From assembly GCA_013115145.1 (NCBI GenBank), contig JAAPAO010000283.1:1-43208 (forward strand): 43,208 nt of DNA, read 5' to 3'. The notes beneath the pieces were generated by a model. That model saw only the letters and a program-made list of their open reading frames with translations. It had not been told where the DNA came from and did not search any database. Below are positions 2,166-11,739 of the stretch, one piece after another. The DNA comes from Perkinsus chesapeaki ATCC PRA-425. Lineage: Eukaryota > Protista > Perkinsozoa. The translations under genes were made by a program, and so were the position numbers. Position 1 is the stretch's first letter. Each line of letters opens with the position of its first letter.

Positions 2166-2886
2166 TTCAGAAGTTTTCTAGTGCTACGGCGTTTAGTTAG
2201 TTGAGATGGAACGTCCATAAATCCGGCAGACATGCCGCGCAGAGCTAATGACGTGAGTTCTTTTAAGAACTGGTTCTAAGTTAGACGGTCTAACTTAGAC
2301 CGCTGATTTCAAACTACAGGGTCTTTGTCTTCGTCTCCCTTTGATCACACACGAACGACATTTTGTTGGAATAGAGCCTCGATTCAACTAAGCATCAGAA
2401 CAGTGTATCGTAGTACTTGTTGTGAACACAGATGGTCGATAGTACGATAATCTGCTAAGGTTATACGGTCTGCTTGCTGCCAAATTATCAGTCTACTACG
2501 GAAGTGTTAGCTCAACCTATGATACTACCGATTAATTCACGTACCTACTGTCTATTTGCAACGGCGGAGTAGTTTCACCGCAGATTCAACCTTGCAACAC
2601 AAGGTAATCTTGGCAAGATTCACACTAGCGGATATCGTGGCCAAAGACTACCGATATGCGGTGATAGGTTCACAGTACGACAGTGCATGAAGGTGCTAAG
2701 ATACGCGCACTAGCTCTTTCGTGCACGATCACACATTGAGTTACACTCGGAAGAAGCGCAACAAGCCCCAAAGGGAAGGAGCCCCCATACAAATCCAAGG
2801 CAGTCACTCCAACCCAGCTCTGACTATCAACGTGGTGAATGGTAGAATCATCGCATGCACAATATACTTGGATACCTCGCTCTAGT

Positions 2887-5800
2887 TTAAAGGTCGTCCG
2901 GTTGCATTGAAGTACCGCATACGCTCCTGAGTAGTGCGAGCTTGACGGCACGAGTCCAACTCTCGTACACACCATCAAACTGTCCATATCCTCGTTGAGC
3001 TGCAATAGTCGCTGCTCCTGGCCATTCGCGTGTTGCCTTGAGCGGAAATCAATCGCATAACCTGAACTCAGTGCAGGAGACCCGATATACTTAAGTGCCA
3101 ACCTCGCTTTCGATACTCCTCGACCTCTGCTCGGAGTTCGAACAACTCGATCAGTGCCCGATCGTGCTCTTCCTCGAGCTCATCGTATCTGCGTGCTTTT
3201 ATCTACAGTGATTTTCTGTATCTCAGTACGCCTCGACGAGCTTCCAATAGCTGGCTGAAGTTTTCTTTTTTTCCGGTAGACCTCCTGAGTTTTCTTGAGT
3301 ACTCTGAGAAATGGCTCTAGCACTATGTAATGCTTCCTTTTCCTCTGCCGAAGGGTAGGCCAGCTCCTTGGTTGAACGAGAATCCCGCCCAACATAAAAT
3401 AAATTGACGCCCGTATAGTCGTGAAGGTCTGTCCCGGTGGCACTCTGGCCTGGGGCCTGATCAAAGTTAGGTGTTCACTTGCCCGGCAAGGGTCCAGCAA
3501 TACGGCCGGTTGAGCAATCGGAGTTAGGGGAAAGATTCCAGACTCATCAGAATAGCCTAACTTTAATAGCTCTTCGCGGACCTAACGGAGGGGTTCAGTT
3601 CCCGCAGGGTCCCGGAAAACTCGTACATCGTGGGTTATGACAAGGTGGCCAGACTGAGCTACTTGGGCGACGGCCACCGCACAGTTCACTGTTTCCCCAC
3701 TGAGCACATATCTAGCAGCATGGCTTGCAAACACCGTGGAGCGTTTAAACCACCTGGGATTCATGGCCGCGATTACCATTCCGTGGGCTGGACCACAGTG
3801 CATGCTCATGCGCAGAGTGAAAAAGTCTTTATGTGTCACTAATGCCTCACCGAGCACACTTTGGCCAAACCTAGTTACCGTGTGATAGCACGGCTACAGA
3901 ATCACAGGGCTTTCACCTAAGCATCCTCTCAACATGTTCGTGCTTCCGGGGGGTCCTGTGTTGGAGAGGTGTGCTCGAAGGATCGTCGATGCCTCCAGCA
4001 GCAAGAAACGTGAGGTTTTGGACAAATGGAGTTGTATAGAGCTGATATTCCCGAGCCTTGACAGATTTCCCTTGTACGGGGCAATAGAGCCACTGAGGTT
4101 TAGGACCTCTTGCTGGATGAAGTTGTATAGGTCATTGACAGCGGCCGTGAAGTCGTATGATTCCTTTTGGGAAGTCTGTGTTGCTGTGATACATATGACC
4201 ATAACCTAAGGATTCAGTAATTCTTGCACCGTACGAGTAAGGGCCAACTTACTGATACCATCGGGTACGCTTGAGTCACGTTATCTTCTCCCTCTTCGAT
4301 ACGGTCACAGATAGAGCTCGGCAGGGATTTTCTCATAAAGTCAAGCCGAGTCTGGGCCTAATTTTTGGACTATGCCGAAACAGATAGAGCACGCTTAGCT
4401 ACTTCTGCGGCCGAAGCTGATAGCTGATGCAAGGCAAACATGCATTCTAATCTGGACAGCAACTGAAACTTGTCGAAAGGCTTGTAAATGAAGTCATTAG
4501 CCCTGCGAGGAACAGAAATATAGTACTCCAGAGCAAGTCGGAGGGCACCACCTGGCTTCAACTGCATCTCGCAGGATCTCACTGCTCTTCCTCGTAGACA
4601 TGCAAAGTATCAGAAGTTTATGCGAAAACCCTTCTCGAAGCTTTTTGATATACCTGACTTACTCTGGAAATCGATTACTAGTTCGTATTACTCGCAGCCA
4701 GCTTTGTCCCCTCTGACGTCCGTATCGACCATGACCAAATCGGGTACCTGAGAGCCGGCCTATACCAACACTCTACATGAGAGCCGACTAGCCGATGGGT
4801 CTGCAACCATTGGTCAGCGGCGTTGGTGGTAGACGCTTGATGAAAAAACCTAAAAATGCCTGAAATAGCTTTCACATTGTCTTGAAGGCTACCATTTATC
4901 TTCTGCGAGTTCGGGGAGATTTTCCAAGATGGCTAGAGTCATTGGATCCTCGTCAACCAGTAGAATATGCCTAGTCTCAGCATGCTGCGACGTATGCTTT
5001 GCTACAGTTCGAGCCGACAGCTGAAGCGCGAGCAGAATCTCCACATGGGTCTTGAGATTGATTTGAGCAGCTTTCAGAGAGATTTTTTTCATTGTCTTGA
5101 GATAATGAACGCATCATTTCTGTCTCCCGATTGTGTATTTCAAGCTCGGCAGACCTGGAGGCAAACCTTGTCTTGGCGCTGTGCAGCCTCGAGCGCCCGC
5201 TTGGCTTGAATTGACGCTGCAGCATCTGCATCTCTTCTGCTGGTTGGTAGACTAATAGTGACGCTGGTACCAAGTCCCTTACCTGGAAGAATAACCGACC
5301 CATCATCATGACGATGATGATCATGGACCACGTCAATATCGCTACCGGTACTCTCAATATGAAACCTTCCACCATGCGCTTTAACAATCCTTTCGACTAA
5401 TGCTAGTCCGAGGCCTATATGAAAGACTTGCAACCTTCAAGTCATTGATATCCACGTACCTAGCCCTTCATACTGTCTTAGCGCATGATCCTCCTCGCCC
5501 TGCTCGAACGGGTGAAGGATGCGGGCAAGGTGCTCCTCTTCTATGCCACAGCCCGTATCAGAAACCTTAGTACCGAAACGTCGGCAAAGCAAAGAGCTTG
5601 AACATACTCGGAAGAATGCGAAGCGGTCTGGCAGCTCCGGATCGACCATGTCGTGAACGGGGTCATGAGGATCGTCGAAATCGGGAACATGCACCTAAGA
5701 CCGATTGATGCGTTTCGGGGCGATGAACTTTCACACTCGGATCGTTCCTTCGTTCGTGAACTTGCACGCATTGCCAAGTACGTGCGACATCACTAGTTTG

Positions 5801-7290
5801 AACTTCTCGATATCAACCCAGACAACCGGAGGATAATCGAGATTGGTTGGGCACTCTTGCACCAAGGAGACCGCTGAAAAGGTTGTTGAAGTGCCAGCTG
5901 ATATCAGGTCACCGTGCCTGGTTTCAGCAAGGGTCGACCGCTCTTATCACAAGCCGTTTTTTGGGCGTGAACGGCCTCCTCGAGTGCATTGTAGAGATCA
6001 ACTGCTCGGGTTCTACATGAACAATCTTCCAGAAGCGCTGAAACTACAGCTTGTACTTCAGGCGCGAATCTTGAGCGAGCATCTTAGACATCTCGGTCAC
6101 GTCCTTGAATACTTCAAGGAGCCTCTTGGCCGACCCTGTCGACACCGTGCACTCTCTTGGAGACATGGAATGTGACACACCTTTCACGAGTTCCAAGTGC
6201 CTCTTGCGACCTGGGTTCGATTCACTTCCAGCTAGCGCATCTGCCAGGCCTATAATAGAAGAGACGGTTTCGCGCGAAAAACACAGTGGTCACCTATTAT
6301 GCCATTTATAGGTGTTCGTAATTCATGGGAGATATTTGCCAGCAGCGTCTCTTTTCTTATCTCATTTAGCTTCCTCTCGGATGTATCCTTCAGGATGAAT
6401 ACGATAAATACGGGCTCACGATCCTCATCTAGTTCTACTTAGCAAGATCAGCTTCCGGCAAACGCTTATGAGCCTACCAGCATGCCCATCATTTCTAACC
6501 TTCATCTCTAAGGTCCTGGACCACGAAAACGTGCGTCCCTCCTGTGTTTCGGGGGCGGATGCTGTCGGAGGGCGAATAAGTTGAGATAGAGCGAAGAGTC
6601 GTCCTTGTACTTCAATTGGAAACGTATGGCCTTGGCGGTGTATCCCATACGCCTGTGGATTAAAGGCAAACATGTTTGAGGATTCACTGGTATTCAGCCA
6701 CAAAAAAATCTTATGAAAGGATGGGCCTACGGACCTGCCTGCACTGCAATCAAGGTAGGCTTTTAGAAATGTTGCATGCGCGTGCATAAGCTGCACTTTG
6801 TTTTAGGACACTCACTTACCTCACGAAAGTGGATGAAGTCGGCCGGCCAAAACCCGTTCTTTTCCTTGCACCGCGCCATGCGTGCAATGAAACGTTCCAG
6901 CTGCGGCATGTGTAGTTCCTGGCTCTCTGGGGCCATGAAAATAGACATCTTCGAAGAGCTTAAGCTGGAGCGAACGGTACTCGGGCCTATTACTCCGAGT
7001 CTGTCGTCTTACTGTGTGTGGTCGAAGCCGAAAAGCTGCACTGTGGCCTGATTTGCTGCGACGATTTCACCCTCCAGATTGGTGATAACCATCGGGTCCA
7101 GCACGCACTCTGTAACTGCTATGAGAGTGAGGGCCGGCCCTTGCTGCGCGGCGGCAACTTGGCTGAGACGTCGCACTCTGCGAAGATGTAAGAATACTTT
7201 GCACTTTCCTTAAGGCGATTACCCTATTGCTGGCGGTTTCTCATCTCGCTGTCTAGGGTTCCTCGGGATAGAGTCTGTTGTATCGCTCAT
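2887..7290 (-). CDS. Soluble hybrid histidine kinase: PAS - HisKA - HATPase_c - REC - degenerate class III nucleotide cyclase - coiled coil
   Basis: Spliced translation gives PAS (DPMVITNLEGEIVAANQATVQLFGF...SIFMAPESQELH...FRE|AYGIHRQGHTFPIEV...VFIVFILKDTSER) and H-box SHELRTPINGIIG (His codon 6325-6327). It continues with N-box LGNACKFT, G1 DTGCGI, F-box PFEQ, G2 GLG|LGL, and receiver ILLVDEDP...PDLVMVD...ILCMST...GANDFIYKPF. Then SLPSSICDRIEEG...YPMVS|VMVIC...LRMSMHCGP...NPR|YVLSGETVN and a coiled coil YDELEEEHDRALIELFELRAEVEEY. Stop codon at 2887-2889. No transmembrane segment seen. Confidence 0.9.
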
Positions 7291-8040: not shown

Positions 8041-8169
8041 GGCGCATCTTTAGGATCTGAAGTTCAGACTTGTTGCAAGCACGAATGAAGCTCAACAATC
8101 CTTTATGCCAGAAATCAGGGTTACTATTCGATCCAACATACACAACATGCGACTCACGCCATCAGTGCG

Positions 8170-9662
8170 TCATCCAGATTTCCCGCCATCTGAGCAGAAG
8201 AGTGTATCAATTCTAGGTCGTATGTGCTTAGACAGCTGTCTAGACACGAGTAGTAAGCGGCGGATACCTACCTGGTATGCTGGGAAGATGAGTCCCATGT
8301 TGCGCTTTGCCATGGTCATGAACTGCTCGTATGATATCTTAACGCTGGCTGGGTCGCTCTTACTAAGCCCTGAAACATCGTTAGGTGTGACAAGCAATGA
8401 CTGAGGAGCACCCCTTCACCCATTGACTCTAATATTGTGTTGGCCTTTTCTTGAATGACACCCGGGGCTGCATCTGGGAAGTTGGCACTGACCAGGAGTT
8501 CAACAGCTCAAGAGCAAAAACTCGGTACCGTAGGATATTGAGGAGTTCGGAGTGATCGATGAAACCGGACTGATCTTCATCGAACATCAAAAACGCAAAC
8601 TGCAGCTTGCTGATCTGGTTGCTTCCAGTGTAATTAGACAAGCCAACCTGGAAAGGAGGCTTTGTCTCTAGACATCAGCTCGGTGGATACGATGAACTCT
8701 TTAAGCTCAATAGAGCCGCTTTTATCGGCATCGAATACGTCAAACATTCGCTTCATGAGGTAGGAGTCCTTCTGCTCCATCACGGCAAGGAATCTGCGTT
8801 AGGCGCCTTCCCTTCATTTCCCGCGCTTTCTCATGTTTACTCGGGATATTCGATTCTACCAGAGCCGTCCTGGTCAACAGCTTGGAATTTCTTGTACACC
8901 TTTTTGATGTAAGCTGGTTTGAGCTTGGTTCCACCAGTGAAGCCTTCCATTATCCTAATAGGTTAATCACCACATCCGATCAAAGTGGTATACTTAGTCA
9001 TGCTATCTAGTCCTTGGGACCCGGCAGTGGGACTGACACCTGAGCCCTCTCTCACAGTGCTGCACAGATTCTACGAGGCTCACCGCCGGCGATGGCACCA
9101 CTTGAAGCTTTCGGTGGTTTCGGTCCAGGGCCTTTTCTTTCAAAGTCTATGTTGTGCGGATCCTCGCTGAATAGGGCGCGGAAAGCTGGAAAGGATGCCT
9201 GACAGATGCTCGAGGCAAGCAGTTCTTTGTTGGAAGTGACCTGGCCATCTCCGTCAGGGTCGCACATCGCTATCATTTCGTCAATTTCAGCATCGGTGGC
9301 GCTCTCTCCAATGAGAGAGAGGACATGACGGAGTTCGCTGGCGCCAACCTAAAAAGGCTTGGACAATGCCAGCTTTGCTCTCTCCCACATAGCCATTTCT
9401 GTCGAGATCGAATGAGTCAAACGCTGCTTTGATTTCATCATCTGCGTAGGTCATATGCTCGGCAGCTACCTGCAAATGCAAGGGCCTTCTTCAACGTTTC
9501 GTGACCATCATTTCGCTTTAGGAACCGGAAGACAAGCCAAAGTGATTGAATCGATTGTGTGACCTTGGCTGCTGGTTTGTGTGGCTTGTCTCGAATAGCC
9601 GTCACGGCACCCGGCAATGATACTACTCCGTTTACCGACTGCTGCACGCTTTCTTCTGCCAT
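8170..9662 (-). CDS. Multi-EF-hand calcium-binding protein (5-6 EF hands; calmodulin-like pair plus calcineurin-B-like lobe)
   Basis: Loops DLDRNGY|VGASE, DPDGDGQ|[29 protein letters not shown] and [12 protein letters not shown], plus a degenerate final hand (ISYEQF). Linker [15 protein letters not shown] is calmodulin-like. Confidence 0.85.
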
Positions 9663-9800
9663 TCCCCGAACGGATGACTTAGGGTCCCTAAGTTAAGGAG
9701 GGTTGCGCCCTTTCGAGAGATCGTTTGCGTCACTCGCAACAAAACAGGTAATTAAGCTCAGAGTAACATCGGTGGTAACTGGTAGTACAGGAGGGGCATG

Positions 9801-11739
9801 CTACCGCGTGCTCGACATGCTGTCGCTCAAGGAGCCACCGCCTTCAGCAGAGACCCCAGAGGAGTTCTCACGGTGGTTGCGGCCACTAGATAACGACGAA
9901 ACGCTCAGACCAGATGTCAATGCTCCAAGCCACTTCTTGCCCCATGAAGAAGAGGAAGAAGAATTAGGCATGCTTTTCGGCGGAGACTGCATGGTCGAGG
10001 ATTTCACTGATTCATGAATCGACTTTTTCGGCGGAATGGTCTCTTCGGCGTCGTCTACTTCATCGTCAGATATATCCCAGTCGTCGTCCTGTCCGCTCGC
10101 GAGAGCCTTATTGTCGGCCTTCGAACCAGCAGACGGTATGTTCAACCGTGGGACTTCCCGCAAAGGGTTCACTGGCACTGTTCGAGCAGGAGCATCTTCT
10201 TCATCGGAAGCGGGGAGCTCCTCTGCCGAGGTCTCACTCTCCTCTTCTTCTCTATTCTGTATAATCATCTGCCCCACGTCGTGGACCAAGTCATGGAATG
10301 CCCCCGCTGCAGTGTACTCTGTCTGCGTCCACCTGAAAGGCATGCTTGGAGTCCTTTTTGTTTTAGCTTGCCTACGCATCAGCTGGCAAGTGCTTCGTGG
10401 GAGCCTTGTACAAAAATGCCGACAAGTTGGGCCACAGCGTGCCGTCACCGCTTTCAGATGCTTCCGTCTGGGTGCTTGCGGGAACGCCGACCGTTGCTCG
10501 TCGACCACACCTGTAGCGGGGTAGACAAGTTACCGTAACCTGACCCTCACGCAGTGCAAAAGCGCTTCCCGGGCTTTGAAGGCGACACTTCCCGCTGCAC
10601 TTCTACTGCTCGTCCAACTAAAATGGCATACCTATATTCTTTCGCCTCATGAATCTACCTCCTTTGTCCTCTAGAAACTGTCCAACCTCAGTGGCCACTT
10701 CATAAGCCAGGCCTTGAGCAAAGGCTGTTATGGAGTGCTCTGTCTGGACGCTTTTTGGTAGGCCTCGGGGAGAGGTCCTAAATACACAGGAATCACTGTA
10801 GGGCCAGTGAGAGGGCCCTTTCAACAGCTATAGGGGCGCGAAGACTACTGTGTTGAGGTATTTGTGTGCGCAACTTCTTCAAAGTCTCCGCCGCTGTTTT
10901 CATCGGCATGTCCGCATCTACAAATAATGTCTAACAAGAAGACTTCAAAGGAAACCTTACAAGAAGCAGCCATTCACGGGGTGTACTTCCTGGGGATCGA
11001 CGCCTGTGTCTACCATCGTGGGCCTTTCTGAAAGTGACATGACATTAGCGAAGCTCCCTCTAATAAGAGGTGTACCATATAGGCTTCGCTGCTGCTGTGA
11101 CGGACCCTCCACACTCGGTGATCTTCGGTTGTTATCTCCGAGGCCAGCAAGCACTTCTTCGTACTGCTCAGTTACAGTCTTGAGCCTGCATCGGAAAGCG
11201 AATGTTTTTAAGAGGAAAAGCCGATGCTGATACGAAGGGTTTGAACGGCAGTAAGCCAGTGAAAGATACGTGTCCTACTTGAGCTACGAAAGATACTAAA
11301 CAGGTTAAGGCTCAGCAGGATATTGGAAACCTGGAGGTTGTAGAAAGGAGCGGTATGATTGACCCACTTATGCTGCAGCTCAATAATGGCTTGTCGATAA
11401 TGACTTATACAACTTCGAGCGACGTCTCGCTTCAACAGCTCCTGGTTAAGCCGACTGAAAATAACGGTCCGTAATCATGGCGACATCAACGAAGTAAGAT
11501 CACCTCTCTAGCTCGCGGCAACGAACACAAGCCGCCTCGGGCACATGCACTGTGGTTGGCTGATCTAGCTCGGCTTCACCCGTATCAGCTTGAATATACG
11601 AGACAGACATGGGGTGAGACCAGACATCACTGCCGAGAGGCCGTATAAGATATTTTTGTATATTCAAGAGGGGTCGGAGTTGACGACACAGTCTAACTAA
11701 TACAGTAGTACCGAGGGATTGCTGTAGGTGGATACGCAT
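9801..11739 (-). CDS. Hypothetical multi-exon protein with acidic low-complexity C-terminus
   Basis: Long ORF 9801-10508 (EEEESETSAEELPASDEED, DDDWDISDDEVDDAEE) plus protein-like upstream exons (LNQELLKRDVARSCISHYRQAIIELQHKW; AFAQGLAYEVATEVGQFLEDKGGRF) separated by GT-AG introns. No family recognised. Confidence 0.55.

Follow-up and report, generated by a model that had tools for sequence, protein, structure and literature searches.

The 43,208-nucleotide (nt) stretch of DNA analysed here (contig JAAPAO010000283.1 of assembly GCA_013115145.1; hereafter the window) comes from Perkinsus chesapeaki, a member of the perkinsids, which are alveolates related to dinoflagellates and apicomplexans. 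Its minus strand carries, at positions 2882-7290, the gene FOL47_005040, whose limits were set by the exon map of the public protein and by a refined coding sequence. GenBank lists the product as a hypothetical protein of 954 amino acids (P0001), and UniRef names it 'histidine kinase'. A first-pass annotation, made from the nucleotide sequence alone, had proposed that a single gene here encodes a PAS domain, a histidine kinase, a receiver, a cyclase-like part and a coiled coil. Pfam and the exon map bear this out. The public protein matches HisKA (6e-14), HATPase_c (1.2e-12), Response_reg (1.2e-12), Guanylate_cyc (1e-8) and PAS_4 (3.3e-5), and the first four of these domains are already attached to it in the GenBank and UniRef records. 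Comparison with its relatives indicates that a soluble, intact hybrid kinase and receiver are joined here to a cyclase-homology domain whose catalytic residues are lost.

Translated from stop to stop, the minus strand between 7300 and 2880 yields a run of short frames in which parts of the PAS domain, the SHELRTP motif, the four boxes of the ATP-binding domain (N, G1, F and G2), the receiver and the cyclase-like domain can be recognised; several single exon pieces are recognised by Pfam on their own. We searched 1.84 billion representative proteins exhaustively by phmmer with the 103-amino-acid cyclase-like exon as the query. Four proteins were matched, and the top one was FOL47_005040 itself (97% identity across the matched part). 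Mapped onto the window, the public protein has 27 exons and 26 introns, 22 of which are 38-51 nt long. The refined coding sequence has 28 exons and 986 codons for amino acids with zero internal stops (994 if a 41-nt intron, 5938-5898, replaces the 65-nt one at 5938), and 23 of its 27 introns fall within the same size range. Two counterparts were available from Perkinsus olseni: an ortholog of 912 amino acids (P0005, locus L003) and a second copy of 458 amino acids that is cut by a contig end (P0002, locus L002). In the protein alignment of the two species, 22 of the 27 intron positions match in both column and phase.

Judged by the DNA, the public models of both species understate how intact the protein is. 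In P. chesapeaki, the interval 5912-5695 is called as a single 218-nt intron, which omits an intact exon with the N-box (5737-5873, minus strand; HVLGNACKFT, with Asn340 at 5772-5770). This exon was recovered by tblastn of the P. olseni ortholog on the window, shares 80% identity with the P. olseni protein, fits the alignment of bacterial kinases and leaves the refined coding sequence open. In the same model, splicing also removes the ATP-binding domain's final strand, GKGLGTSVTISLP (window 5251-5299). In P. olseni, the exon for the PAS beta-sheet is present in the DNA (L003, about 3626-3788) but missing from model FOZ60_006160, which also lacks part of the DHp helix. At the 3' end of the P. 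chesapeaki gene, a final 46-nt intron leads to a conserved C-terminus, ...DSLMERMRYFNATGRPLN, and to a stop codon at 2884-2882; the first-pass annotation had overlooked this intron and wrongly ended the gene at 2887.

Kinase, receiver and PAS sensor

The HisKA (DHp) domain occupies 5949-6378 on the minus strand, and its alignment with bacterial hybrid kinases places the phospho-acceptor His221 in the SHELRTP motif at 6327-6325. HATPase_c follows at 5245-5853 and, according to Pfam, alignment and tblastn, holds the N-box, G1 (DTGCGI), F (HPFEQG) and G2 (GLGLGLA) boxes and the final strand named above. The ATP-binding residues are present, among them Asn340 in LGNACKF and D383 of G1. In the P. 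olseni ortholog this domain is full length and scores 3.3e-19, versus 1.2e-12 in the public P. chesapeaki protein. The receiver (4421-4972, minus strand) contains Asp504, the phospho-acceptor Asp552 (4726-4724), Ser582 and Lys604 (4483-4481); its acidic cluster VDED together with D552, S582 and K604 matches bacterial receivers in the alignment. The earlier claim that the phospho-accepting His and the acidic pair, Asp, Ser/Thr and Lys of the receiver are all intact thus agrees with the comparison to bacterial hybrid kinases. Between the two Perkinsus species the receiver is 91% identical, with a proportion of differing nonsynonymous sites (pN) of 0.055, and the kinase domains are 84-86% identical; synonymous sites are saturated (pS about 0.83). 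With an H box, a complete ATP-binding domain and an intact receiver all in place, the protein is, by its sequence features, a hybrid histidine kinase.

Within the ATP-binding domain lies a 63-nt in-frame segment with GT-AG ends (5283-5345) that is free of stop codons and encodes a His/Asp-rich stretch (SDIDVVHDHHRHDDGSVILP). An unrelated in-frame segment of 45 nt is found at this site in P. olseni. The P. chesapeaki segment may be spliced out as an intron, or it may be kept as a variable loop.

The N-terminus is formed by a PAS domain (amino acids 39-205, encoded by four exons within 6373-7131, minus strand), which is recognised by the Pfam families PAS_4, PAS_9 and PAS_8 and whose Atlas structure has template modelling (TM) scores of 0.57-0.60 to PAS-containing proteins. 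No 19-residue Kyte-Doolittle window anywhere in the protein has a mean above 1.53, and we found no transmembrane-like segment by this measure; the protein is therefore predicted to be soluble. This, together with the PAS domain at the N-terminus, supports the earlier description of a soluble, rhodopsin-less kinase.

That description had also called the protein gas-sensing. When a PAS profile built from both species was compared with solved structures, the top match was the haem-PAS domain of RmFixL (1d06, E-value 4.4e-5), ahead of the next PAS domain by a factor of 1000. His96 (6912-6910), which is also present in P. olseni, aligns with the His of the RmFixL motif RHEHDG (LMPEPYRHEHDGYLQRY versus FMAPESQELHMPQLERF); in RmFixL this residue is the haem ligand His194. 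The alignment spans the first 64 residues and ends before the G-beta strand, the remainder having been aligned by eye. Arg125 in HFRE (6825-6823) lies outside the HMMER alignment and is a hand-aligned candidate for the distal Arg. Unlike FixL, the Perkinsus PAS domain has a longer FG loop and an extra loop of 17 residues, and its haem binding is putative; FixL is not a hybrid kinase and has no cyclase domain. Gas sensing by a putative haem-PAS domain is, on this alignment, a plausible hypothesis to which we give somewhat less than even odds.

The cyclase-homology domain and C-terminal region

Downstream of the receiver, a linker helix (...TRLDFMRKSLPSSICDRIEEG...; 4259-4420, minus strand) aligns with the YxRFVPxEFL segment that stands ahead of bacterial cyclase domains and is helical in a low-confidence model; the first-pass annotation had recognised it as a helix of the type that precedes class III cyclase domains, and the alignment agrees. 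It leads into a class III cyclase-homology domain (CHD; 3516-4258, minus strand), whose assignment draws on Pfam, phmmer against solved structures, the Atlas, Foldseek and residue alignment. The Guanylate_cyc match scores 35 bits (cut-off 21.9; 1e-8) and covers profile positions 4-156 of 183. Among solved structures, the CHD hits first the C2 domain of mammalian type II adenylyl cyclase (AC2; 8e-7) and then fungal rhodopsin-guanylyl cyclases. The Atlas model of the CHD has a TM score of 0.76 to cyclase clusters, and the first 50 Foldseek matches of our own CHD-containing model were all class III cyclases. The latter is an AlphaFold2 model built from an 11-row alignment, with a predicted local distance difference test score (pLDDT) of 46, and served for ranking at the level of the fold, not for residue geometry.

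The catalytic residues of this fold are degenerate in the alignment (positions past the HMMER alignment were counted by hand). The first metal-binding Asp corresponds to Cys670 in P. chesapeaki (4193-4191): the FADIxxFT motif reads VICITA there and LISVTS in P. olseni, so that bacterial HK-REC-cyclase proteins (histidine kinase, receiver, cyclase) with MFADIRSFT stand against MVICITAT and MLISVTSK in the two Perkinsus species. At the second metal Asp (the GD motif) there is no acidic residue; Q/N/L or A/R/L are found instead. The transition-state Arg is replaced by Ala797 (3674-3672; GETVNCAVA), and the NxxxR motif has become NCAVA in P. chesapeaki and DEAVA in P. olseni, where the Asn is an Asp as well. 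Of the substrate residues of AC2, K938 corresponds to Phe or Leu and D1018 to Val in Perkinsus. With both metal Asp residues lost, and with them the transition-state Arg and the residues that specify the substrate, we expect no synthesis of cyclic AMP or cyclic GMP. Since neither the metal-donor set nor the complementary set of residues is present, the domain should be incapable of contributing one or the other half of an active site, and this also applies to heterodimers.

Between the species, the CHD has a pN of 0.30 versus a pS of 0.83, and the ratio of nonsynonymous to synonymous rates (dN/dS) between the two P. olseni copies is 0.31. The CHD and the C-terminal part contain invariant blocks (e.g. 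MHCGPAHG, AGGIDD and KLGYSDxSGIFPLTP), and their frames are open in all three copies. From its residues and its rates, the CHD is a predicted pseudo-cyclase: the fold is present, the catalytic residues are lost and the sequence is under purifying selection. The first-pass annotation was right about the fold, as Pfam, solved structures and structure matches indicate. With its cyclase part catalytically degenerate, the protein should not work as a phosphorylation-controlled cyclase in the manner of cyanobacterial CyaC, a system of the same HK-REC-cyclase order, or of the algal 2c-Cyclop proteins compared below. A pseudogene status of the CHD exons was considered separately and ruled out by the three open copies and the dN/dS of 0.31.

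The C-terminus is a helical, coiled-coil-like region (YDELEEEHDRALIELFELRAEVEEYRKRG...LLQLNEDMDSLMERMRYF...; 2885-3187, minus strand), which is kept in the three Perkinsus sequences, has a dN/dS of 0.19 and forms long helices in the low-confidence model. Between it and the CHD lies a poorly conserved tail (3188-3515, minus strand), 31% identical between species and with a dN/dS of about 0.9 between the P. olseni copies. This tail is nearly unconstrained, while both of its flanks are conserved.

Proposed working, alternatives and genomic setting

Overall, we suggest that FOL47_005040 encodes a soluble, intact hybrid kinase and receiver joined to a non-catalytic pseudo-cyclase that, with the coiled coil, serves as an output or scaffold module; we assign this reading a probability of roughly 0.6. 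The PAS domain, possibly a haem/gas sensor of the FixL type, would respond to a signal and modulate autophosphorylation of His221 by HATPase_c, and the phosphoryl group would pass from His221 to Asp552 of the protein's own receiver. The phosphorylated receiver may then alter the dimer formed by the linker helix, the CHD and the coiled coil, which would act via binding and not via catalysis. In such a scheme, the CHD could be a dimeric module whose conformation or partners change with the phosphorylation of the receiver. The phosphoryl group might, additionally or alternatively, move on to an HPt protein. What the sequences show is the exon structure, the order of the domains, the intact motifs, the missing catalytic residues and the purifying selection; phosphotransfer, the role of the pseudo-cyclase and the signal sensed are inferred. 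A more specific version, in which the FixL-like PAS kinase senses O2 or another haem ligand and the receiver switches the dead cyclase dimer and coiled coil as a scaffold or regulator, for example of bona fide cyclases, is a speculation that we rate as rather improbable. If true, it would provide a pseudo-enzyme output for a eukaryotic two-component system.

Several points weigh against the proposed scheme. Confidence in the structure model is low (pLDDT 46). The gene model rests on annotation, homology and between-species comparison, and two small RNA runs labelled with the species contained none of the sampled words and had zero reads mapped to the locus. Finally, the CHD evolves about five times faster than the receiver, and a portion of this domain may simply be decaying.

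This last point bears on a first alternative, according to which the protein is an ordinary hybrid kinase that works with an external HPt protein and response regulator, and the CHD and coiled coil are a functionless remnant of a bacterial-type HK-REC-cyclase ancestor. The CHD is indeed the fastest-evolving folded domain (pN 0.055-0.08 in the receiver and kinase), every catalytic residue in it is lost, and eukaryotic hybrid kinases usually signal via HPt proteins, as stated by Kabbara et al. (2018; Genome Biol Evol 11:86, PMC6324907). However, the dN/dS values of the CHD and of the coiled coil, the three open copies and the invariant blocks argue for a retained function, and we regard a functionless remnant as unlikely.

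A second alternative keeps the cyclase active under the control of phosphotransfer, in the style of CyaC and 2c-Cyclop, such that phosphorylation of the receiver turns on the synthesis of cyclic AMP or cyclic GMP by a C-terminal homodimer. The order of kinase, receiver, linker helix and cyclase fold equals that of characterised examples, and Kabbara et al. (PMC6324907) conclude in this sense for alveolate HK-CYCc proteins in general. However, none of the three Perkinsus sequences has an acidic residue at either metal Asp position, the substitutes vary between species, and no D or E is found closer than about 8 residues to the beta1 position. Ala stands in place of the transition-state Arg, P. 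olseni has Asp instead of the Asn, and the substrate Lys and Asp are gone. An active cyclase is thus very improbable.

The third alternative concerns the junction between the receiver and the cyclase-like part. A stop-free minus-strand frame (4609-4373) ends with '...SAAEVAKRALSVSA' at a stop codon (4372-4370), and the same frame reopens at 4357 with 'AQTRLDFMRKSLPSSICDRIEEGEDNVTQAYPMVSV'; our translation reproduced this behaviour as it had been described at the outset. The first-pass annotation had bridged the two by a 45-nt GT-AG intron at 4402-4358, and this proposal holds. The intron (4358-4402, minus strand; phase 0; GTAGCT...AATTAG) contains the in-frame stop, is typical for the gene in that its size lies in the range of most other introns, and is already used with exactly this junction in the public model FOL47_005040. 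Both P. olseni loci (L002 and L003) have an intron at the same column and phase, which is 44 nt long (GTAACG...TGTAG) and unconserved in sequence; the P. olseni proteins read ...HQLSASAAE and then VQ(T/S)T(V/I)EFMRRSLPKS... across it. Since the P. olseni segment measures 44 nt and the frames upstream and downstream of it differ, the receiver is joined to the conserved downstream part in that species only by splicing. The residues ahead of the first downstream Met are likewise kept in frame (AQTRLDF versus VQTTVEF). We therefore find it scarcely credible that a kinase-receiver gene ends at 4372-4370, with the cyclase-like part as a separate downstream gene or a product of intron retention: the in-frame stop within the 45-nt segment, an isoform ending after the receiver that retention of this intron would give, and the zero reads at the junction in the two small RNA runs speak for it, but a mere 45 nt leaves no space for a terminator and a promoter, the conservation ahead of the Met and the P. 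olseni intron contradict it, and independent gene models from three assemblies link both parts.

Upstream of the kinase gene, both species carry a gene for an EF-hand protein (window 8154-10290, minus strand; L003 1546-2834), which makes the neighbourhood syntenic. Bacterial contamination was ruled out by this shared neighbour together with the 27 spliceosomal introns. By the 3' end of the kinase gene lies a gene on the plus strand (184-2165) for a protein of 426 amino acids with a 2OG-Fe(II) oxygenase domain (PF13640, prolyl-hydroxylase-like). That a member of an oxygen-dependent family adjoins a FixL-like PAS kinase may be coincidence; synteny with P. olseni was compared within 3 kb. The L002 and L003 copies of P. 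olseni share 88% amino acid identity, with a dS of about 0.17, over the C-terminal 421 residues; because they come from assemblies of different strains, the pair may represent alleles, variants between strains or paralogs. Among the further P. olseni models, some (1274 and 1664 amino acids) are probably merged with neighbouring genes.

Relation to known systems

The layout of the protein is not new, and the gene represents no new kind of system. The first-pass annotation knew of no description of the architecture in this lineage; the genus is in fact covered by Kabbara et al. (PMC6324907), and the gene is annotated in GenBank and UniRef. Kabbara et al. count three histidine kinases in P. marinus and none in apicomplexans, and describe PmariHK1 of P. 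marinus as a kinase with a C-terminal CYCc domain and VbrasHK1 of Vitrella brassicaformis as an HK-REC-REC-cyclase protein. The initial framing by the absence of two-component systems from apicomplexans also misses the point, as the host is a perkinsid in whose genus histidine kinases had already been counted. PmariHK1 and VbrasHK1 are thus alveolate hybrid histidine kinases with a C-terminal class III cyclase domain, the former from the same genus. They differ from the present case in that PMC6324907 draws them from domain scans alone, without a look at catalytic residues, and VbrasHK1 has two receivers where the P. chesapeaki protein has one. Neither the exhaustive phmmer search with the 103-amino-acid exon nor word-index searches that took P0002 and P0001 residues 596-830 as queries retrieved a P. 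marinus relative. As for wider relatives of the CHD, phmmer gave two Perkinsus clusters and two spurious repeat proteins, and the word-index searches matched proteins of P. chesapeaki and P. olseni only.

From alveolate fusions of this kind, Kabbara et al. (PMC6324907) inferred a coupling of the kinase to cyclase activity. Because the cyclase half appears to be a pseudo-enzyme, this does not hold for the protein of P. chesapeaki and P. olseni. What is new, to a modest degree, is an apparently intact kinase and receiver attached to a dead cyclase, for which we found no description within the literature searched. Two-component signalling is gone from apicomplexans and survives in their perkinsid and chromerid relatives, and the gene is a conserved Perkinsus example. 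The annotation of the protein is to be corrected, and it offers a tractable case of a pseudo-cyclase output in a parasite of oysters and clams that matters economically. Were its PAS domain to bind haem, the kinase would also become a candidate hypoxia sensor in a parasite whose host tissues are periodically anoxic.

The gene had further been singled out as the best candidate for a new system, an assessment at odds with how common the same domain order is among bacteria. The best 120 database relatives include at least 8 bacterial proteins with these domains, and in the 7 that were rescanned the order is the same and the catalytic motifs are intact. Bacterial HK-REC-Guanylate_cyc proteins (e.g. 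P0021, P0025, P0032, P0049 and P0087) line up kinase, receiver, linker helix and cyclase in exactly the same way as the Perkinsus protein, with 26-29% identity in the core. They keep FxDIxxFT, GD and NxxxR and mostly have membrane or Cache/HAMP/CHASE2 sensors, whereas the Perkinsus protein has a cytosolic PAS domain, 27 introns, a cyclase that appears dead and an extra coiled coil. In a quick maximum-likelihood tree of the HisKA-to-REC core (27 rows), the branch of the Perkinsus pair is very long, and its link to a Prorocentrum kinase is weak. The tree carries a long-branch warning and does not settle where the core came from, and we draw no conclusion from it on bacterial transfer.

Two characterised eukaryotic fusions frame the comparison. 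In 2c-Cyclop of Chlamydomonas and Volvox, the guanylyl cyclase needs ATP and His-to-Asp phosphotransfer (Tian et al. 2018, PMC6284317). It shares with the Perkinsus protein a kinase, a receiver and a cyclase domain within one eukaryotic chain and is the nearest functional precedent for the control of a fused cyclase domain by phosphotransfer. It differs in its 8-transmembrane rhodopsin and active guanylyl cyclase, where Perkinsus has a PAS domain, no membrane segment and a degenerate cyclase. Dictyostelium ACR likewise combines a histidine kinase, receiver(s) and a class III cyclase; its phosphoacceptor His is absent and its cyclase is active (Chen et al. 2010, PMC3009899). Like the Perkinsus protein, it is a eukaryotic fusion in which one defunct module is kept for a structural role. 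ACR, which also has seven transmembrane segments and two receivers, is the mirror image of the Perkinsus protein: a dead kinase with a live cyclase, against what appears to be an intact kinase and receiver with a dead cyclase.

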